This document shows, piece after piece, positions 4,574-20,727 of a DNA stretch of 64,000 nucleotides. Positions within the stretch are counted from its first letter, which is position 1. Each line of letters opens with the position of its first letter. The notes beneath the pieces are model-generated. The model had not been told where the DNA came from. It worked only from the letters and a program-made list of their open reading frames with translations, and did no database searches. A program made the translations under genes and the position numbers. Origin of the DNA: Zygnema circumcarinatum SAG 698-1b (lineage: Eukaryota; Plantae; Zygnematophyceae); the NCBI GenBank assembly GCA_037447605.1, contig CM074804.1:1860001-1924000 (forward strand), read 5' to 3'.

Positions 4574-6075
4574 ATGCGCAGCTGGAAGCCTGGTTTCCAT
4601 GCTCCCCTGTTTCAAAAGTTGGCATCTTGTTTGCAATTTCGGGGCCCTCCGTCGCGAGGCTCCGACTCCCTTTTTACTCACCGAAATTTCGAAACCGCAG
4701 CGCCTTTTTTCACTGATCTCAATGCGAATCGGAAAACATTTCAGCTTTCTTTTCTCTCCCCACATCCAATAAAGCATTTCTTTTGTGCCCCTCGTCATTT
4801 TTCAAGTCCTTATACAAAGAACGCATGCGCTGCCGCCGCTCCGTCCTCGCTCGAATTATTTCGGATATCGGAAACACTTTTTTGGTCTGAAAACAAAAGA
4901 AAGAAGCTATTTTCTACATCTGCGTCTTTATCTGAAGATGGTTCGAATGATAATTCAGCAAAGAAAAAAATATTTCCGAATGTCGATTACAAGCAGGAGA
5001 AGATGCCCATCGATGCGGTTGTGAAGGTCTTCACTGTCTCGAGCAGCCCTAATTATTTTCTCCCATGGCAGAACAAGCCTCAACGGGAGGTTACCGGCTC
5101 AGGTACTCACAATTATACCCCTTTTAAACCCTAAATTACGACAACAGTAAGGGTAATAGTGATAGTGTTAGTTTTTAAGTTACAAGTTAGTTAAACTAAG
5201 GGTAACTAAGGGTAGTTAGTTACTGCGCAGCTAAAAAATTGGATAGTCATTAATTCGTCTCTATCTGTCACGAATACGTGATACTAAATATTTCTAGTTA
5301 ATTTTTATTTGTTATTGACTTGCCAAAGGGCATTTTAATAACATTTTGATCCAATGTTCTAGTCCACATTGAGGGTGGGTTTAGAGATGACAGTACAACT
5401 CATGCAAATTCTAGTCCTTCCCTCCCACTCTCCTTTCTTGCCTGCCTCACCTCCCTCACCTTCCTCCCTCCCTCCCTCCCTCCCTCCCTCCCTCCCTCCC
5501 TCCCGCCTTCAACCCCCCTCTATGACTCATTCAAGGCTCTGGGTACATCTAGACAAAGACTGTTGGGTAAGTCAACCTTCTCCGATCAACGTTCGGTGTC
5601 CCATAAAACTGAAATCCAACTGAAACCTTTTTCGGGGTTTTGTTTAAAAATACCCTTGCTTGTTTCCGATGCAGGTTTTGTGATTTCAGGGCGGCGGATC
5701 ATAACAAATGCTCATGTAGTTGCTGATCAAACGTTTGTGCTCGTAAGGAAGCATGGATCTCCTATGAAATTTCGCGCCTTTGTGGAGGCGGCGGGGCACG
5801 AGTGCGACCTTGCACTGCTGAGAGTGGAGGAGGAGTCCTTTTGGGAGGGAATGCATCCGCTTGAGCTTGGGGGGATTCCTGAACTGCAAGAGCAGGTGGC
5901 TGTGGTCGGATACCCTCAGGGTGAGATATTCGTTTCAGGGAATTTTTAGAGTTTTTTTTTTCAAGATTTGGGGATGTGTAACTCACGGAGTAAAAGGATT
6001 TTTTAATGCTTAAACATGAACCAGCTCTTGGTTCTGGGGGAGGTGCTCGGGGAGGGTGGGAGGGGGGGCAGACTC

Positions 6076-6143
<68 letters not shown>

Positions 6144-8738
6144 TGGGAGTTTGTAAGCCTGTTTTTGCATGGGCTGGACATGTTTCCTGCAGGAGGAGAC
6201 AACATATCTGTGACGGGCGGAGTTGTATCGAGAGTGGAGCTCACTCAGTATGCACACGGAGCCTCTCATTTGATTGCGATTCAAATTGATGCGGCAATAA
6301 ACCCCGGGAACAGCGGGGGGCCCGCTCTCTTGGAAGATAAAGTGGCCGGTGTGGCCTTCCAAAACCTTGCAAATGCGGAGAATATTGGGTATGCAATATT
6401 TCTTTATCACCTTTCACTCTACCTCCCCCTCCCACGTTCTCTTTCGCCTTCTGTCTCTTCCTTCCTCTGCTTCTTCCCTAGTTCCCCTCTCATCGCCGCT
6501 GTCCTGCTCTTCTCCTTCTCTCCTCGTTGCGCCTTTCCTCTCACCTCTCCCTCTCCCCTATCTCTCTCTCCGTTCCTTTCGTCCCCATCCCTCCCCTCCT
6601 CTTTACGCCCCCCTTCCTCTTCCATCGCTTCCCACACTTGCCTCTCTTCCGACGTCGCTTCTTCCTCCTCTCCCTCCCTCCGAATCTCAAATGGCAATAA
6701 CCGTTCATTTTCTGCCTTTTCTCTTGTCAAGAGCAGGTACATCATTCCTGTTCCAGTAATCAACCATTTCTTAACAGATGTGGAAGAAAGAAAGCGCTAT
6801 GTTGGGTTCTGTTCTATGGGTCTCACATGTCAAGCTCTGGAAAATGCGCAGCTTCGAGAACACCTTAAGCTTCCGCCCGGCATGACAGGAGTGCTAGTGA
6901 ATAGAGTACAGCCTCTTAGTAATGCATCGAAGTGGTTGAAAAAAGATGATGTTCTTCTCGCATTTGACGGAGTTCCAATCGCGAATGATGGGACAGGTGG
7001 GCTCCGGCTTTAGAAACCCTAAGAGACTAAGAAGCTGGAAAACTGTAAAGTTAAAAAAATTAAAATAAAGGGGTATCAATCACATGAATGAGGAACCTCT
7101 AGTGTGTTAAGAGCTTTAGGATTGTAGACAGCTTCAAGTAATGGCTTTACGGAGATGGCTAAAAAGGCAAGGTTATTCAGATTGTGAGGTTATTTAGTTC
7201 AGTCAAATCACATTGATCAGTTCTCAGGCAACATGAGACTGAGTTTAGAATATGCGAAATTTGTAGTATATGTTGAATCCAAGCTCTGACTCCTGAGAGG
7301 GCGATGGCAGTGCATTTCAGGAAGCGGGAGCGGATAGCTTTCGATTATCTTGTGTCGATGAAGAGGGCGGGAGAGACGGGCCGAGTGAGAGTGTTGAGAG
7401 GAGGAGAGGAACTTGAATTCGATATTGATCTCTGTCCGGTAAACTCTCATCTGTCACTCACTCTCTCACTCACTCTCTCCCTTCCCTCGCTCCCTATCTT
7501 TACCCTCTCTCTCTCTTTCTCTCACCTTTGCCTCCGACAATTCATCGAAGGCGTGACTGACCATAGCAAAAACTAGCGCCCTAACTCTGAACCTATAGAA
7601 CGACCTAACCTTCACGGTTTTGACCCAACAATCTGCCCAACCCCTTTCTTTGTGATAACTCAGTTGACATATTTCCGTTGAATGTGTTCCTGCTTGCATG
7701 CATGCAGCTGGAGGCGTTAGTCCCCATCCAGCAGTTCGACCGGCTCCCCTCGTACTTCATATTCGCGGGCCTCGTGTTCGCGCCCCTCGCCCAGCCGTAC
7801 CTGCACGAGTACGGCGAGGACTGGTACAACGCCTCCCCGCGGCGCCTCTGCGAGCGGTCCCTGCGGGAGGTCCCCACCAGGGCCGGCCAGCAGCTCGTCA
7901 TACTCTCGCAGGTCACTCTCTCGCCCGCCCGCCCGCCCTCGCATGCATGTGCATGCATGCATGCATGCATGCCGCCGAGGGAAGGAGATGCATGTGCATG
8001 CATGCATGTATGCATGGCGCTTGGCTCGGTTTTGTGGCATGAGGGGGAATGGGAGGGGAGAGGTGTGATGTGACGTGACGTGACGTGTTGTCATGAAATG
8101 TGGTGTGATGTGATGGCATGTTGTGACGTGACATAAGGGGAAGGGGATGTTGGGCTTGTCGTGTTCTCAGGTCCTCGTGGATGACATCAACGCGGGGTAT
8201 GAGAGGCTGGCGGAGTTACAGGTGAGAGGCCTCCCTCCCTCCCTCCCTCCCTCCCTCCCTCCCTCCCTCCCTCCCTCCCTCATTCTATAGTGTGTCTTGT
8301 TGTTCTAAAGAGGGTAATAATCTTGAAAGCCCCAAAACTATCAATCTATCAACCCCAAAAGTGAAGATATGAATCAAGAGATTGTTTTCTAACACGAGGA
8401 TTGTTCCTTGCGTTCCCTCATTTTAGGTGAAGAAAGTGAACGGCGTGGAAGTGCACAACCTGCGGCATCTCCAGCGATTGGTCGAGGCCTGCACCGCCCC
8501 CGCCCTCCGCTTCGACCTGGACGACGAGCGCGTGGCCGTACTGCACATGGAAACGGCGCGACAGGCGACGGAACGGATACTGAAACGGTACAGAATTCCG
8601 TCGGCGATGTCGGACGACCTGCTGAAGGTGGAGGAGGAGGAGCCCGCACGGGGCGAGGGGGGGAAGGAGACGGCGAAGGGGTTGGGGGGGGGAGAGGGAG
8701 AGAGAGAGAGGGAGGGGGAATCGGCTGGAGGAAGCTGA
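4574..8738 (+). CDS. DEG10: Deg/HtrA serine protease, DEG10 type (probably mitochondrial)
   Basis: Exons 4574-5102, 5675-5920, 6193-6388, 6737-6996, 7311-7438, 7708-7911, 8171-8221, 8427-8738. Intact triad motifs [15 protein letters not shown] and [10 protein letters not shown]; PDZ regions; [11 protein letters not shown]. Arg/Ser/Phe-rich N-terminal presequence-like segment. Confidence 0.93.
7941..8132. repeat. (GCAT)n self-complementary microsatellite followed by (GTGAC/GTGAT)n pentamers in DEG10 intron 6
   Basis: GCATGCATGCATGCATGCATGC at 7951-7972 is a perfect palindrome; more copies extend to 8016; pentamers at 8063-8132. Confidence 0.9.
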
Positions 8739-11454: not shown

Positions 11455-14400
11455 TTATACGCTGCGGACCCCCCGTAATCCCTTAGGCCTTAAGCCCCCC
11501 TTCCTGGTTGCAGCCTTTTGCTTCTTCCTAAAGTCATCTCTTAACGCTTGTTTTGTGGCTAACCAAACTTCCTCAGCATCAGCGGTTCTCATGAAGGCGC
11601 ATTCGGCTCTCTCCCCTTTCACTACAGCTGCACGGTTTTCCATTCCTTCTCTCTCACTCACTCCCACTCCCTCCCGTACCTTCTCCTCACTCTTCACCTC
11701 GCTTCTCGTCTCCATGTGATTCTCTCTCTCTGCCACCCTCACTCGATCAATGGACCCATTTTGACTATGCTTCATCTTCACCTCCGTTTCCATTCTACTT
11801 CTCTTTTCGACTTTCTGTTCCCCTCCAGAAGAGGCTCCTCTCCCACTGTCCTTTTGCGCGCTCTCTCTCACTCTCTGACTCTCGTCACCCTGAGTGACCC
11901 CACTTTTGCCTATTAGTGAAGTGAGTGAGAAGGAGACCTTTCCCTCCGGATCCACCAAGCTCTTCCAAGACGCCTTTTGTATCCACTCTCTCTCTCCCTC
12001 TCTCACCCCCTCTCTACTCTTACCCCCTTCCTTTACACTCATTTTTGTCTCCTCTCCAGCTCCTGAACCCTCCCCATGTAGGGTATTTCCGTTTTCAAGG
12101 TCATTAAGGTCAATAGAGTCAATGAAGTCCTTAGGGTCGTCTTTAAGGTCTCCTCCAACCACTTCCATCTTCTCCCCCTTGGCCTTCTTTTTAGCATTTC
12201 CCTTGGTGCCCTTTCTATGAGCAACGTCAGATTTGCCTTTCTGTTCATCAAGGTCCTCTATATCCTTGTTTACTCTATGTGAACTCTGCTGCTCTCTCCC
12301 CTCCAGAGGTACACCTCCCATACCCTCTCTCTCGTCCTCTATAACATCCCCTATACCTCCAAAAGGAGTCATTCCTCTCTCCTCCCGAACATCTTCCTCT
12401 TTTACACCTCCCTCACCTGCATCCCCAGCCTCTCCCTTTCTCTTCCTCTCCTTTTTTTTCGCGTCCTTCCACTTCCTCTTCTTCCCAGTTCGAGCCGTCT
12501 CTCCATCCTCTCCTCCCACCATGTCCCCCCCACTCTCTCTTCTCTCACTTTCCTCCACCTGTCGAAGGATGCCCACTTCAAGGGCTTCTGGACTTTCAGG
12601 CATTCCAGAGCCTTCCTTCAGGCCTTCAGAATCGTCCAATTTTTTAGGGTTTTTAGGAACCTCATTCCCCCCCTGCATCCATACCTCCTCCTCCTCCCCC
12701 CCCTCCTCCACCTTCTCTCCCTCCTCCTCCTCTTCCCCCTCTTCCCCTTCGTCGATCTCCTCTACATCATCAAGCTCATCATCCACATCTAATTCTCCTG
12801 CTGCGACTGCAAAGAGCTTCGCCCACGCACTCCCACCCCCCTCTGTCTCGCTCTCTCTTACTCCTCCCTTCCCCTTCCCCTTCCCCTTTCTTTCGTCTTT
12901 TCTTTCAAACTCTACACTCCCTTTCTTACCTATTTGCTGAATTGTAGCAGCCTCTTCTTTCTTCCTCGACATGCCTTCAGCAACACCTCCTTCTCCCTTC
13001 ATCCCCTTCTCCTCCCTCTCCCCCACTCCCTCACTGTAGTCCGTCCCATTGCGAGTAATGTCCCCAGCAGAGTTTGCACCATCCCTAGTCGAAGTTGTAA
13101 CCAGAGACGGGTCATACCGAGGAGTCGCGACAAATCCAACATTTTTTCGAGGTTTCTTGTCGTCCTCCCTGCCAAGACGAACAATAACTCGAGAACATTA
13201 AACCACACCTTCTGTTTCTCTGTCTCTCCCTCTCTCCCTCCCTCTCTGTCTCTAGCAGTCAAAAACACGCACTCACATCCCAGAAAACGCCAACATCCCC
13301 AAACCTAACATACAACAAGCAATACGATAGCAAGGATTCTGGACGAATTCAAGTTTTGGAGCCTTCTAGAAGATGTCTGCAAAGTTTTCAGCCGAGCAGC
13401 ATCCCTGCCAAGGAACGAGATTGACCTGAATCGCTCCTCCGGAAACATAGCTGCAAGCAGCGCGAGATTCTGCCTCCTTTCCTCCAATAAAGCTTTCGCT
13501 ATTTCATCTCCCTCCTCAGCCTCTCCTGCCTCAACCCCTGGTAAGCAACACACAAAGAAGGGGAGGGAAAGGGTGGGAGAGAGAGGACGAGGCGGGCGGC
13601 AGAGAGAAGGGGGGAAAGGGAGAGAGAGAGTGTGAGAGAGAGTGGGAGAGAGGGGGGGGCAGTCCTTAATGGAATGTTTAGCTTCACCTTCCATTTGAAG
13701 AATTTCCAGACTACTGTAGGCTTTGGTCTGTAAAAAAGCATTTTCCCTCAAACATTCCTACCTTCATCCACAGTTGTCGCCCCCACTGAGATGAAACCAT
13801 CGTGCAGCTCCTGAAGACCTCCTTCGAGTGCCTCCTCCCCAAGTTCTATGCGCTCCGTTCCGTGCTCTTCCGCTTCATATCCGTTGTATCCTACACTTCC
13901 AACAAGTGTCGTCCCGCTCCGTTTTTCCAAACTGATTTCAGTTTTTTCCTTCACTCTCATATCAGAAATCCTTACATTTGGATCCTCCATAGAAATCGGA
14001 GCATGTCCGGGTGTCTCCATGCGCTGCCGTTTTGTATCGCGTGAGGGGAGATCCTTCGTGCCGGTCTCAACTGGAACTGAAACTGAAACTGAAGGTTGCG
14101 CAGTTCCATGCGATACGCCTTCCAAGTCACGAACCGCTTTTTCCATGACTGCGTGAAGGGGCGGAACTTCGATATTGCGAAAACTGCGTTTATGTTTTCC
14201 AGTTTCGGGGCCTCCCGCTGCAGGCATCACCTTCACCTGAAAAATATGCAACAACGAAAAATTAGGGTTTCATGATCGCAAACTCACGCGCTTTTCAAAC
14301 TTAGTTTTTTTTTTTTTTGCAATTTCATATCTTCCGTATGTCCAAATCCTGACGACAGGTTAGAGTTTCTGAGATTTTAAAGTTTTTCTGGTTTCTAAGA

Positions 14401-15570
14401 ATTTGGGTCCCAGATTTTCAGTTTCCAAAAAGGGCAGAGTGGGTCCGTAGAAACCCTAAAATCCTGGAAACCTTAAAGTCCGTAGAAACCCTGGAACACC
14501 GTTAACGTCGGAAAGTCTTGAACCCTAAATCCTAAACCCTCAGTTCAAATTTCCAACCTCCAACTCTAAAACCCTAAATCCTGAAAAATCCAAAACCCTA
14601 AAGCCCCAAAATCCTTAAACCCCAGAACCCTAAAACCCCAAAGCCCTAAAACCCCAAAACCCTAAAGCCCCAAAACCCTAAAACCCCAAAACCCTAGAAC
14701 CCCAAAACCCTAAAATCCCAAAACCCTAAAACTCCAAAACCCCAAACCCTAGAACTCACCTTCTTCCCACCCACGCCCCATATGAGCTTCAAAGGCCGCA
14801 GATTTTTGGTTCCGCTGATTAAATCTCCAGACTTATTTTTTCCAGAGCCAATAAGGGCCTCCGCTGTAATTTTTTGCCTTTTTTTCCGTTTTTTTTCGGC
14901 TTCAAGCGCAGCCTTCTGCTCGTCCAGCCACTCCCTTTGAAGTCGAAAAAGATAAAATTCCTTCGCTTTTTCCACGCGCAGCTTTCCGCCTTTCCATGTG
15001 GCGCCGTTGTACTGAAAATCGGAAATAAAAACAAAAAAAAAGGGGGACGGGAAATAATTACAAAATTGGTTCGATTCTAAACATCTCAAAACCCTAAACT
15101 CTCCTCAAAATTGATTTCCTGAGGTTTTAGCCTTTTTTCGAAATTTAGATTTTTTTTCGGGTCCTATATTCCTCTATGTTTCTGAACTTTGAAGGCTCCG
15201 TAATTTCTGGGGTTTTAGGGTTCAGTTACAAATTTCACGGTTTCCGGATCCTGCTTTTCGGGGTTCAGGGCGGCCCCTTTACCGCCGAGATGCATTTTTT
15301 GAGGCTGCCCGGCCCCGCTGGCAGAAAGTCCACGTAGGCAAACCCTTTGCAGGCGTCGCCCCCCTCCGCGGCCGCCACGACCTCCACGCCCGCCACGTGG
15401 CCGAACGGCGCGAACCGCGCCGCCAGCTCAGCGCCGGACAGGCCCCGCGCCGGCAGGCCCCCCACGAATAGCCGCACGGGCCCCGCCATGGCCCCCATGC
15501 CCACCATGTCCTCCATGCTCATGGCCTCCTCCATGCCCACGCCCCCCATGCCCATGGCCTCCATGGCCAT
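11455..15570 (-). CDS. ROS3: Nucleolar RRM protein, ROS3/NOL8-like
   Basis: Five exons (about 15570-15283, 15011-14760, 14237-13756, 13506-13417, 13035-11455). RRM VRLFVGGL...KGFAYVDF followed by YNGATWKGGKLRVEKAKEFYLFRLQREW, TGKHKRSF, WIQKASWKSLV and C-terminal CAFMRT, matching conserved ROS3 blocks; long acidic/lysine-rich centre. Confidence 0.88.
14452..14752 (-). repeat. Degenerate telomere-like array (AAAACCCT/AAAACCCC on +) filling the 5' part of ROS3 intron 2
   Basis: Roughly 20 or more 7-10 nt units, densest at 14570-14752, beginning immediately after the GTGAGT donor. Confidence 0.85.
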
Positions 15571-15621
15571 GGCCTCCTACATGCCCATGGTCGCCATGCC
15601 GATGCCCCCCCCCATGTCCAT
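15487..15621 (-). other. ATG-dense repeat at the ROS3 start: in-frame 14-codon uORF plus Met-rich leader
   Basis: MDMGGGIGMATMGM*EAMAMEAMGMGGVGMEEAMSMEDMVGMGAM: 15 in-frame ATGs, TAG at 15579-15577. Confidence 0.85.
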
Positions 15622-17252
15622 GGACCGGACCGGACGGCCTCCAAGGCGGAGGGCGACCTCGTCACTACAGTATGGCGCGGCAGCGACGGCCATCGTACGG
15701 CAGCGCCGCGTACATCCGTACTGTACGTATTTCGCGTTCGTACATACAGTACATGTGCCTTATTTACGGGATTTTTCAAAACCTATTTAGGGGACTGTCC
15801 CCTATTTATCCTTCACGTCGGCTCAAAGCGCCTTCTTGTCCCCTCAGTTGTATCCAGAGGACCGTATTTCATGACAACGTTTCTGGTCTTTCTGTTTATC
15901 ATTCCATGCACAAATATTTGAAAAAAGGTCAAATATGTTCTTGCTTTGGAATGTGGATCTGATTAGAACTCTGCGTCGCGTCCCGCCAAGAAATGGTGCT
16001 CGTTGGATGGACTCTTGCGGGGCGAATTGCTATCAGGGTATGGAAACTGTGGTTTTTAGGGTTTTTAGGGTTTTAGTTAGGGTTTTAGTATGCACGTTGA
16101 ACGACGGCGATTGAAAGGAAGCTGGCGACTCCAAACGTGACAAGAGGAGTGAACGATTAGAGACGATGGATGGAGGTGCTTCTTTTAGACTAGTGTATGT
16201 TTCATTATGTGAATTCCGATGTATGATATTATCTATTGCTATTATCTATGTTTTACCATATACCATGCGCATGATGTTGCGCGTCTCATATTGTCCGTAT
16301 GGTCTTTCTCAACAAGACAGCTTGACGGTTGCCTTTTTTTTTTTTTTTTTTTTTTTTGAATCTACCGCTGCGTTTGCAAAAGTGCAGCACCTTCATCGCC
16401 TCCTCTCCTCTTCGAAGGCCTCTTCTTTCACGCCCACCTCCAATTCAAAAGCGACCACTGGAACCAATATTAACCAATTTCACTCGAAAAACAAATAGAA
16501 AATGAATAGAGAGAGAGAAAAATTGGTAGAATCGATCGTCAGACAAGGTCAGAAACCCTGACATAGTCAGGTTTGAAATGACCATCGAGATTGCCCATGG
16601 TTTACCGAGATGATTCTTTTAAACCTGCATTTCCCTAAGTTAAAACGGGTTTTAAGGATCAAGTTAAAATTCATACAAACAGTCCCTCTTTATATTTTCA
16701 TGCTCGTTGATATTGATTGAATTTAATCGAGTCTTGTTGCACCGATTGTAACACTCCCTCGTCGTGTGTTTTCTCTGCTCTGTACGATGCAAAATCTGAA
16801 ATTCAAGGGACTTATCTAGTACCTCTCTCGCGGGAGACATCCCCTCATAATTCCTTGCAAACGGACAACAGACCTCTGCCGAAATCTCGTCGAACTGTTT
16901 TGACGGTACATCACAATGCGGTACTCAAGGGCAAAAGTTACTCTCATCAAGTGTGGCCTTCTGGAAAGCAGAAGCCTTAAAGAAGCATGACCTCCCAAAA
17001 ACCGATCCAAAATCTTATACCATTTCGTATTCGTAAGGTCACACAACCATTTGACTACGACTACAGAATATCTGAGAGATACAGCCGACAGTGCGCAAAA
17101 TTCTCTCGAGATCGCAATCCTCTGCCAAAAGGCCTTCCAGAACAGGGTTCTGAATTCACTCAACCCTGAGCGCTGCAAATTCTAATAGCAACCTTTCCCT
17201 CCCCTCATGAGCAATTTGAAACCGAGTACACAAACGCTACAGCGCTTCCCGC

Positions 17253-18233
17253 CTAACACGTGGCGGAGTACGCGCCGTTTGCAAACCTCGCATTGCAGCC
17301 GATGCCTGTGACAAGCGACTGCAGCGGATACGTCCCCGTGAGAGCCGTGTAGAGCGCGGGACAGGCCGAAGCCGCCGCGCTGAGCACTCCCACAGCTATC
17401 GGGCTCTGGTACGGACTGACGAGGGGCCCTCCCGCCATCCCGCGCTCCACGGACACTCTCTCGCACAGAATGTTCGCGGAGAGACCCTCGCAGCCGCGAC
17501 TGAGCGGCACGTCGGTCACGTCCGTGACGAGGGTGACGCCGTTCTGCGTGGCCGCGGGGTACCCGAAAATGGCGCGCGGCTGCGTCCCTGAGGCGGCGCT
17601 GGCCCACTTGTGCACTTGCCCGACGAGGGACGTGTCCAGCTTGACGACGGCCACGTCGCTGCCGGCCTTGAGGGTGCTTGAAAACGTGGGAGCGTTCTGG
17701 AAAGCAGTGAACAGCTTTACACTCTCCCACTCGCCGAAGGAGTAGACCTTGTCGGCCGCGCCGTTCTGCCTCGACAAAGCGAGCAAGGTGACGCCCGAGC
17801 CCAACAGCCACTTGTTTTTGTCGGTGTCGTAGATGCACTGCGCCGCGGTGGCCACAAGATTCGGCGCTATGAGCACGCCCGAGCAAGTTCCGTACACGTC
17901 GTCGAAGGACGAGGAAGTAAGCAAGAGCAGCACCGCGCCCGAGCTCACGCCGACTTGTTCGAAGCCTGGAAGGACCGCGGACGCCGGAAAGCCGATGTTG
18001 CAAGTTGAGAACCCTTTGGGAGCCAAACCCGTGTCGTTTTTATTCTCACGGAGAATGTACAGAGCTACAAGCTCGCTGAGAGGCTTGTTGAGTGAAAGCT
18101 TCTCCATCAGCTTGGAGCTTCCCTTGCGTTCGTTACTGATCCCTACCGTCTCGGGGGAGGCAAAGGCTGCGTTGGAGAGGAAGAGGGTAAGGAGGAGAGG
18201 GAGGAGAGTGGGAAGGAGGTGGAGGGCGGCCAT
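17253..18233 (-). CDS. Intronless secreted trypsin-fold (PA clan, V8/Mpr-like) serine protease homologue, predicted catalytically inactive
   Basis: 326-aa ORF with a hydrophobic signal peptide. Motifs CSGVLIAPNLVATAAQCIYD (His->Gln), GSDVAVVKL (Asp kept), IFGYP and GMAGGPLV (Ser->Ala); 8 Cys; NDT sequon; TATAAAT ~80 bp upstream. Confidence 0.85.
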   Translation of the reverse strand: MAALHLLPTLLPLLLTLFLSNAAFASPETVGISNERKGSSKLMEKLSLNKPLSELVALYILRENKNDTGLAPKGFSTCNIGFPASAVLPGFEQVGVSSGAVLLLLTSSSFDDVYGTCSGVLIAPNLVATAAQCIYDTDKNKWLLGSGVTLLALSRQNGAADKVYSFGEWESVKLFTAFQNAPTFSSTLKAGSDVAVVKLDTSLVGQVHKWASAASGTQPRAIFGYPAATQNGVTLVTDVTDVPLSRGCEGLSANILCERVSVERGMAGGPLVSPYQSPIAVGVLSAAASACPALYTALTGTYPLQSLVTGIGCNARFANGAYSATC

Positions 18234-18313
18234 GGCTGCTTCTCTGAGGCGAGAGCTGAGAGAGCGAGAGGAGATGAAGAGCGGCGTGGAGTGGAGCGTC
18301 GGCAGCCGCTTCC

Positions 18314-18473
18314 ATTTATAAGTGCGCAGCCGCCGACGGGTGGATGCGCGGCGAAGCGAGGCGGAAAAACCAGAAAAAACTCGGGCTGCAAAACCTGAAA
18401 ATGCTGACGTCAGCGTCAGGGACAGGGCGGAAGAAGGGTCTCAGTACGAACGAGAGTTCCTGGGCTGACGTGG
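18314..18473 (-). promoter_or_regulatory. Proximal promoter of the pseudoprotease: TATA box plus bZIP-type ACGT elements
   Basis: TATAAAT on - at 18320-18314; perfect palindrome GCTGACGTCAGC at 18403-18414; TGACGTGG at 18466-18473. Confidence 0.6.
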
Positions 18474-18814
18474 AGGCAAAGCTCGTCATTGATTGGCTGC
18501 GCGGCTGGTCGGCACCTCGAACACGGCAGGCCACATATGGGCAAGGGAAATTGATGACGTCGACTCCATATTGTCGTTTCCGATAGAAAATATTCGGTCG
18601 ACGGAGGCTGACGCGAGCGGCTCGCTTGCGGACCAAGCGTGCCTCGGGCGAGACTCGAACTCGCGACTCGCGGAAAGGGACGAGGGACGCGCTGACCGCC
18701 AGATCGTGGCAGAGTGCTCGTGCCGATCGACGCGATGCCGATCGGACGGCCCTGCGAGTACCACGAGTACGGAATGGGCTTTGAGGGCGCGGGGCCCACG
18801 AATCTAATGGCTAA

Positions 18815-19395
18815 TAGGGCGTGTCAGACTTAAAAAATTCTCGTAATACTAAAAACTCGATATTCGTAACATTTCGAGTCAACGTCAGTAAAACTCAAAT
18901 TCCCGAGCCTAGTTTTTCGCACTCGCGGCGCGGTCCTGTTCGCACTCCGCGATCGCCGTCTTCGCACTTCTCCAAACGCCGTCTTCGCAACTTCGCCCTC
19001 GCGCGGGGCCCTCAGACTTAGAAACAGCGCCGGCGCGGCGCGCGGAGACCGCTTGTCGTTGTGTCGTGTTGCGCGTCACGGGCGGGCGCGGGCGCGGGCG
19101 GGAAGCCGGGAAAACAACCATGACGTCACGTTGACGCGATTCTCGCCAGTATTTTCTTCGCACGTCCATTTCGGCGCCTCGTTTGGGTGCGAACAAAATC
19201 GTGCGAAGAAATGCAATTTCAGTAAACCCCACGGGTCAATCTTCGCAACGTTGACCCGTTGACTTAGTACAGTTGACTTCCGTTCGGTTCGGTTTAGGTT
19301 CGGGGGCGCGATGATTTTTAGTACTTAGTAACCTCGATTCTCGTAATACTAAAAACTCGATATTCGTAACATTTTGTTAAGTCTGACACGCCCTA
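18815..19395. mobile_element. 581-bp non-autonomous TIR element (MITE), possibly hAT family
   Basis: Perfect 19-bp TIR TAGGGCGTGTCAGACTTAA (18815-18833 / 19377-19395); identical 38-bp direct repeat at 18837-18874 and 19337-19374; flanks ATGGCTAA / ATGGCATC (5 of 8 match as an 8-bp TSD); no ORF. Confidence 0.8.
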
Positions 19396-20190
19396 ATGGC
19401 ATCTTTTTCCCTCACGATGCTTCGAGCCGCGGATCGGACATGTCACGGAGCACGTCACTTCGGATTCCTGAGACGGGATTCTGATTACCGTACCCAAATC
19501 GTGCTGATTTCCTCCGATTCGGGCACATAAAAACCGTATGTACGGCTCCGATCGTTCTTGCGAGATGCGTACAGCACAGTACAGATACCGTACGTTGGCC
19601 GCCGGTCGATGCGGGCCAAAAAGATGCGTCAGGAGTTCAAGTCTCGACGGCCTCGGGCTGTGCCCACAGCGGGCCGGAATGAAATATCTGCAACTTTGAG
19701 GCAGATCCAAATTGTCAATGGCTCGTCTCCGTGACCACCAATGGGCAATGCCACAAATGAGCTGTCGGATAAGGGTAGAATCTCAAGACTCCCTAAGATT
19801 TGACCAGGAAAGATTTCCTGCATGGCAACAGAAGCCATGTGAATCTGTGATTCTCTCGCAGGGCGAAGAAACTGGAATTTGAGATTTCGAGGTCGGTCAG
19901 CTTGCGAGGAGGCATGCGGAGCCGCTGTGCATGTGATTGGAGAAAGGTTGGGAGGAGGTCCGGGCAGCGTACGGCGGGGCGGCAGGCCCCCGACCCGTCT
20001 GCCCGCGGGGGCCGTTCGCGCACCGACACCGTACGGCCGAACCGTACGAATTTTGTGACGAGGGCGGCTCCGGCCTGCGTGCCGTACAGGTAACGGCATG
20101 GTTGCAACTCTTTTGTCGTCTTGTGCTCCTCGTCCTCCGGAGGCCAGTGCGCTGCTGCACTTCTGATTGGGCACGGCGGCAGCGAGGCGC

Positions 20191-20251
20191 CACGTGACGC
20201 GGGAGCGTGCGCCACGTGGCACTTGAAGAAAGCCTCCACTTGCGCCACGTG
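20191..20251. promoter_or_regulatory. Cluster of three GCCACGTG G-box/ABRE motifs upstream of the ABCC gene
   Basis: CACGTG at 20191-20196, GCCACGTGGC at 20211-20220, CACGTG at 20246-20251; ATTGG at 20166. Confidence 0.6.
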
Positions 20252-20727
20252 CAACTTTTTTCTGGGCAGCCCGTTACGAAGGGTTTTATTTTTTTGTTGT
20301 CGATGAAACGTTTTTTTGGGGCAGACTCAACTGACTGTTCGCTAAAGAAGGATTCCTTTTTTGGACAGCTGAAATATGTTTTTTGGGCAGGGACATGTCA
20401 TACGAAATGTCTATCGGGCAGAGTAAAATCTTTCCTAGCCATGAACAACCCGGTTTCAGTTGTTTCGGGCGATAAAAAAGCCACGAAAAAAGCTGCCAAC
20501 TGTCCACAGAAATATTTGAAAGCTACCGTCTTTTGAACAAAATATTTCTTTTTTTTGGCCACTCTGACACGATGAAGACGCTCGCTCCTGCCCATGATTC
20601 ACTGGCTGCCCAAAGAAAGTTTTCCAAGTTCCAAACCTCGCCTTTTACCATACGGTAGTCTCCGAGGGAGGCATGGCGTCGGGTCGAGGAGAGCAGGCGA
20701 AAGCTTGGGAGGGGAGGTCCATGGAGG

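Follow-up and report, generated by a model that had tools for sequence, protein, structure and literature searches.

The locus examined here raises the question of what becomes of a protease scaffold in a plant-lineage genome once the residues for catalysis have been replaced, and of where such a gene came from. It lies in a 64,000-nt stretch of the Zygnema circumcarinatum SAG 698-1b genome (contig CM074804.1, positions 1,860,001 to 1,924,000; this whole stretch is called the window, and positions are counted from its first letter). The first-pass annotation had described an intronless gene for a secreted, catalytically dead V8/Mpr-like protease, a candidate for horizontal transfer from bacteria. 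The features on which the analysis rests are collected in Table 1.

Table 1. Features of the protease gene, its product and the neighbouring genes, in window positions.
Feature	Positions	Strand	Basis or remark
Complete intronless CDS	17253..18233	(-)	ORF list; gap-free colinear RNA contigs; 326 codons + stop, ATG to TAG
Signal-peptide-like N-terminus, residues 1-26	18156..18233	(-)	Hydropathy scan; predicted
Pro-region-like segment, residues 27-77	18003..18155	(-)	pLDDT 50-77; one NDT sequon (N66)
Chymotrypsin-fold domain, residues 78-326, 8 Cys	17256..18002	(-)	Pfam; AF2; structural Z
Gln132 (CAG) at the catalytic His position	17838..17840	(-)	Strand reading; His in 8/8 close homologues
Asp193 (GAC), kept triad Asp	17655..17657	(-)	Strand reading; invariant column in both alignments
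Ala267 (GCG) at the catalytic Ser position	17433..17435	(-)	Strand reading; Ser in 8/8 close homologues
3' UTR	16997..17252	(-)	Shared 3' end 16996-17008 in X2, X3, X7 (three studies)
TATAAAT	18314..18320	(-)	About 30-45 nt upstream of transcript contig 5' ends (18285, 18270)
DegP/HtrA-type (S1C) protease gene, spliced	~4574-7600	(+)	(GA)n/(CT)n-rich introns
RRM-domain gene, spliced	14694-15570	(-)	LFVGGL / KGFAYVDF motifs; RNA contigs cover
ABCC-type transporter gene, spliced	from about 20.8 kb		Neighbour of the protease gene

The coding frame is intact, as annotated: the list of open reading frames contains no frameshift or stop within its 326 codons, and an open frame of this length has a computed probability of about 1e-4 of arising by chance at this base composition. 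Positions 15500-20500 were compared with Logan contigs of four runs, each from a different study of one organism; the contigs are unstranded. From the four runs, contigs of 1278-1526 nt aligned colinearly with the gene, with 0 gaps and 0 mismatches, and the gene is intronless, as claimed. The protease gene was covered at 16702-18226 in run X1, at 16996-18401 in X2, at 16997-17904 and 17875-18270 in X3, and at 17008-18285 in X7. None of the four runs had a contig on the flanks at 16335-16668 and 18506-18672. Three of the runs share a 3' end; in X3 a sequencing adapter is joined at 16997, and the X1 contig extends past the shared end. The TATA box and ACGT elements of the annotation are present, as TATAAAT and as ACGT cores upstream, and two RNA contigs end close by (Table 1); the mere presence of such motifs is no evidence of function. 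Because the contigs cover the gene as a block, have a common 3' end and begin about 30-45 nt past TATAAAT, the data indicate an unspliced mRNA of ~1.3 kb that starts ~30 nt after this motif.

Transcription, which the first-pass annotation had left to be checked, is thus evident in four runs of four studies. The depth of the mRNA was at least that of the neighbouring blocks in several studies. Furthermore, a second index search located the whole CDS in DNA-type runs of this organism and in no fewer than 14 non-DNA runs. It is entirely missing from three RNA runs dating from 2017, and expression of the gene is perhaps conditional.

The neighbours of the gene are spliced, as claimed, and comprise the DegP/HtrA-type, RRM and ABCC-type transporter genes. 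As its flanks are host-type and both DNA-type and RNA-type data of this organism contain it, the protease gene is truly integrated in the host genome. Its GC3 is 0.79, versus 0.38-0.59 in four DegP exons. Neither a repeat pair bracketing the gene (repeat search) nor a poly(A) remnant (strand reading) was seen, so the gene has no hallmarks of transposon capture or retrocopying.

Other elements of the window are recorded here for completeness. A Trypsin match at 6006-7013 was considered as a paralogue of the protease gene and rejected, since the 335-aa "ORF" behind it is a read-through of exons and introns of the DegP/HtrA-type (S1C) gene. A 523-codon frame on the minus strand (11455-13026) is Glu/Gly/Lys-rich and was not matched by Pfam; this frame probably represents a long exon of low complexity, and it accounts for the strong local strand skew. 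The RRM gene has a Met/Gly-rich N-terminus that stems from a 15/18-nt repeat at 15486-15632. About 230 nt of degenerate, telomere-like repeats of the plant type (AACCCTAA / AACCCCAA) with a period of 8 nt form an interstitial array just 3' of this gene, at 14546-14773; inverted copies are located near 15205-15222 and 16035-16076. A MITE-like element (18810-19400) lies upstream of the protease gene, at a distance of about 0.6 kb. Its 28-nt terminal inverted repeats are 89% complementary, and internally it has a 38-nt direct repeat whose copies are identical and 500 nt apart. The contig of one run skips 18836-19337, between the direct repeats, and numerous unrelated transcript contigs contain the ends of the element. 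Neither the Rfam scan nor the tRNA scan gave a match in the window.

The protein encoded by the protease gene looks like a secreted member of the S1 family. In agreement with the annotated signal peptide, a hydropathy calculation shows residues 4-20 to form a hydrophobic core, with AFA|SP after it. The eight cysteines that had been counted are found at residues 78, 117, 133, 248, 257, 291, 313 and 326. Pfam Trypsin (PF00089) matched residues 114-293 with an E value of 5.1e-12, above the gathering score, and Trypsin_2 matched more weakly. An AlphaFold2 model computed from 22 relatives reached a mean pLDDT of 81 and a pTM of 0.85, with values mostly of 84-98 in the domain. In it, a lower-confidence segment of ~50 residues leads into a complete two-barrel protease domain that begins near residue 78. 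Since residue 78 of the model aligns to residue 2 of mature Bacillus intermedius glutamyl endopeptidase (1p3c), residues 27-77 stand in the place of a propeptide. In Foldseek and VIA-align searches, the model matched hundreds of S1 proteases, with Z values of 20-23 to many S1 structures. By its Pfam match and its confidently predicted chymotrypsin fold, the protein is thus an S1 homologue, and its secretion is predicted from hydropathy.

The annotation had placed the protein more narrowly, as V8/Mpr-like. The structural ranking agrees with this: the top row of VIA-align was 1p3c (Z 22.9, 207 residues at 2.3 A), the next rows were the Staphylococcus enzymes Esp and V8 (Z 21.3-21.6), and elastase, complement factor D and thrombin, all S1A, came after these (Z 20-21), so that the lead of the V8-type structures amounts to 1-2 Z units. 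A family profile search reversed this order, with elastase (5.5e-12) above 1p3c (8.9e-8). As a single sequence, the window protein had 1p3c as its best PDB match, which was weak (E 0.055) and confined to the surroundings of the His motif. Feature and shape searches of the ESM Atlas gave Ascomycota, Chlorophyta and bacterial clusters named "glutamyl endopeptidase / serine protease" as the nearest larger families, and NCBIfam, which models bacterial families, had no match for the window protein. Since structure favours V8 and the B. intermedius enzyme while the family profile favours elastase, we regard "V8/Mpr-like" as a fair description of the predicted shape; as a subfamily assignment it is not established.

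Reading of the strand confirmed the annotated triad codons (Table 1); CAG and GCG are one substitution away from codons for His and Ser, respectively. His, Asp and Ser are present in all eight close homologues, and the combination Gln, Asp and Ala occurs only in the window protein. Accordingly, where the homologues have the motifs ATAAHC, GSD(I/V) and GG(M)SGGP, the window protein alone among the eight closest sequences and itself reads ATAAQC and RGMAGGP. Both lost residues are at least 90% conserved in a 22-sequence alignment of relatives. The window protein therefore lacks the His-Asp-Ser triad of an active S1 enzyme and has the make-up of an inactive serine-protease homologue, namely an S1 fold with triad residues replaced. 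Furthermore, no Ser, Thr or Cys stands beside the lost nucleophile in RGMAGGP, which excludes classical serine-protease chemistry on sequence grounds. We know of no S1 enzyme that works without both the catalytic His and the catalytic Ser. We infer that the window protein has no serine-protease chemistry, and the description of a catalytically dead S1 homologue whose active kin keep both residues stands.

A protein that has lost catalysis may be kept for another use or may be decaying. In the latter case, the gene would have been inactivated recently and would be on its way to a pseudogene, still transcribed from an intact promoter and without function. That one base change would restore the active codon at each of the two altered triad positions fits such a course, and constraint is not visible from close orthologs or polymorphism: no relative is near enough for dN/dS, and the runs represent one organism, with no polymorphism in the protease gene. 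The distribution of the changes argues against it, however. Among the 51 columns that are conserved in the family (at least 6 of 8 homologues agree), the window protein keeps 44, or 86%, and the same score for the active homologues, left out in turn, is 76-90%. Nineteen columns are invariant in the homologues; two of them are changed in the window protein, and these are the catalytic His and Ser. For two random losses, the probability that both fall on the three triad columns is 3/171 = 0.018.

The window protein retains the oxyanion-hole residues Gly265/Gly268-Gly269-Pro270, Asp193 and all family Cys positions, and its eight cysteines are positioned as in the relatives P0001 and P0004. Its other departures cluster near the active site; they comprise G264R, which immediately precedes the oxyanion-hole Gly, E228A within GYPAE, and F272V. 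In a maximum-likelihood tree, the terminal branch of the window protein measures 1.03, against a median of 1.31, and is thus not elevated. Together with the uninterrupted frame and, in several studies, a high mRNA depth compared with the neighbours, these observations make decay unlikely. Scaffold retention and branch length, considered over deep divergences, suggest that the scaffold is still constrained while catalysis has been released. The reading of the annotation that this is a pseudoenzyme is well supported, and the kept columns, the branch of ordinary length and the transcription suggest that the gene is maintained rather than decaying.

The relatives of the protein are few. An exhaustive phmmer search of 1.84 billion representatives returned 26 matches at E <= 1e-3, 7 of them at E <= 1e-10. 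P0001-P0007 and P0009, the eight closest, can be aligned over the entire domain, and identity in the family alignment is 26-34% for this close set. The best match, P0001, is 40% identical over the matched stretch and is a 1479-nt transcript-like contig (Logan SRR8128906_28964, run SRR8128906). P0001 has ~100 extra N-terminal residues that are Cys/Trp-rich and contain a WxxxxDCxxWxGxxC-like motif; by eye, this module resembles a plant LRR N-cap, but Pfam does not call it as one. Nor does Pfam make a call in the pro-region of the window protein. P0002 is from the xanthophyte Tribonema gayanum (EukProt), with P0005 as its close sister in the tree.

P0004 (E 2.9e-20) is encoded on a 42.6 kb metagenome contig (ENA ERZ27257064 k141_73189, L002:8001-9266) and has an active triad and a signal anchor. 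Its contig neighbours are PolB, an RNA polymerase Rpb1 fragment and a D5-type primase-helicase; judged by this gene content, the contig appears to be a giant-virus-like genome that carries a secreted S1 protease of the rare family. P0007 is located on an AT-rich, tightly packed contig of 9.6 kb with a ResIII/DEAD helicase and ORFans.

In the tree, the window protein and the algal, transcript and giant-virus-like sequences form a clade with support of 95/96; two short, unlabelled rows, P0016 (JGI/IMG) and P0023, are also within it. Matches named "V8-like Glu-specific endopeptidase" (P0010, P0019) fall into the other clade and have E values of ~1e-5 to 1e-4; the tree does not include animal S1A matches of similar weakness. 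A word-indexed protein search gave no match for the window protein, P0004 alone for the family profile, and P0001 itself alone when P0001 was used. No record in public assemblies matched the window protein exactly, and a literature search on such proteins in streptophyte algae or giant viruses, or on run SRR8128906, yielded nothing relevant.

Patchy spread, absence of introns and atypical composition (GC3 0.79), the traits expected of transfer from any donor, are all present; they are suggestive of a lateral origin without naming the donor. A specific version would have the family moving between algae and giant viruses, the window copy having come from a virus or a host gene having later been captured by viruses. 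The position of P0004 between PolB and the D5 primase-helicase and RNA polymerase genes, and the dense, helicase- and ORFan-bearing contig of P0007, fit such traffic, as do an intronless gene with a composition unlike its neighbours and the very patchy family. Against it, the flanks of the window gene are ordinary spliced host genes, with no viral genes and no bracketing repeats, IMG/VR scans with P0004 and with the window protein detected no relatives, and the tree gives no supported sister placement with a viral sequence. We consider this scenario distinctly unlikely as the account of the gene; a lateral history as such, possibly one involving giant viruses, is compatible with the data.

The bacterial origin proposed in the first-pass annotation, by direct acquisition of a V8/Mpr-type gene and subsequent loss of catalysis, fares worse. 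It could draw on the missing introns and the high GC3, on the Bacillus and Staphylococcus glutamyl endopeptidases at the top of the structural matches, and on the weak matches with V8-like names. However, the sequences that share the 95/96 clade with the window protein are algal or transcript-derived and giant-virus-like, the bacterial-type names lie outside it, and the nearest relatives of the window protein are thus not bacterial. In addition, a JGI metagenome scan gave weak, partial matches of 24-37% identity, mostly around the His motif, NCBIfam was silent, and the family profile placed a eukaryotic S1A elastase above the bacterial enzyme. Direct, recent transfer from bacteria is not supported, and we regard this origin as very unlikely. 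Hardly credible is the idea that the protein is still a protease that works with non-canonical residues, as Asp193 and the oxyanion-hole glycines are kept but RGMAGGP offers no Ser, Thr or Cys as nucleophile and Gln is not a general base.

The explanation that we favour, with moderate confidence, is that the gene encodes a secreted, disulfide-rich, inactive S1 homologue of a small algal and giant-virus-like family, which is kept for extracellular binding and possibly is of lateral origin. According to this explanation, the protein would be exported, as predicted, would be stabilised by disulfides and would be devoid of protease activity, with a predicted pro-region of ~50 residues ahead of a complete protease domain. 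Outside the cell, it may act by binding the ligands of its active relatives, and thereby could mask their substrates or titrate their inhibitors. Alternatively, a different extracellular protein may have become its binding target, in keeping with the way other inactive S1 homologues act. In our reading, it is a secreted paralogue, specific to its lineage, that binds and does not catalyse, and proteins of this kind are known. A bolder version, in which an alga-virus arms race has turned a dead host copy into a decoy for substrates, inhibitors or activators of virus-encoded or own active proteases, is a long shot.

As far as we know, Deg/HtrA-type enzymes are the only S1 proteases of land plants. 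A family of secreted chymotrypsin-fold proteins is therefore unusual in a plant-lineage genome, and here one of its members is dead yet expressed. Among animals and oomycetes, inactive S1 homologues are common, so a dead one is no surprise in kind; the rare clade to which this one belongs is undescribed. The window gene offers a clean natural case of the use of a protease scaffold after catalysis was lost. Moreover, with an active relative on a giant-virus-like contig, whether genes pass between algae and their viruses becomes a question that can be tested.

Compared with the active family members (P0001-P0007 and P0009), the window protein shares the motifs CSGxLI...ATAA(H)C, GYPA, GG(M)SGGP and CP..YT, and with P0001 and P0004 it has in common the Cys positions and a similar C-terminal ...ATC motif. 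It differs in that all active members keep His, Asp and Ser, and P0001 adds an N-terminal module that is absent from the window protein. The bacterial glutamyl endopeptidases (1p3c, V8 and Esp) are alike in fold, with about 205 residues superimposed at 2.3-2.8 A, and likewise carry a pro-region ahead of the mature domain, but identity to them is only 12-18%, and the window protein lacks the catalytic His and Ser.

The third comparison is with inactive S1 homologues, which include the glucanase-inhibitor proteins (GIPs) of Phytophthora, azurocidin/CAP37, haptoglobin and insect clip-domain SPHs and which act by binding, not by cleavage; one such protein, the scabies-mite SMIPP-S (PDB 3h7o), was among the fold matches of the model. 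The window protein stands apart from these in belonging to a rare algal and giant-virus-like clade and not to animal or oomycete S1A, and in having a putative pro-region of ~50 residues and its own 8-Cys pattern. It resembles them in its chymotrypsin fold, its predicted secretion, its substituted triad, and a scaffold that is kept together with its presumed disulfides.
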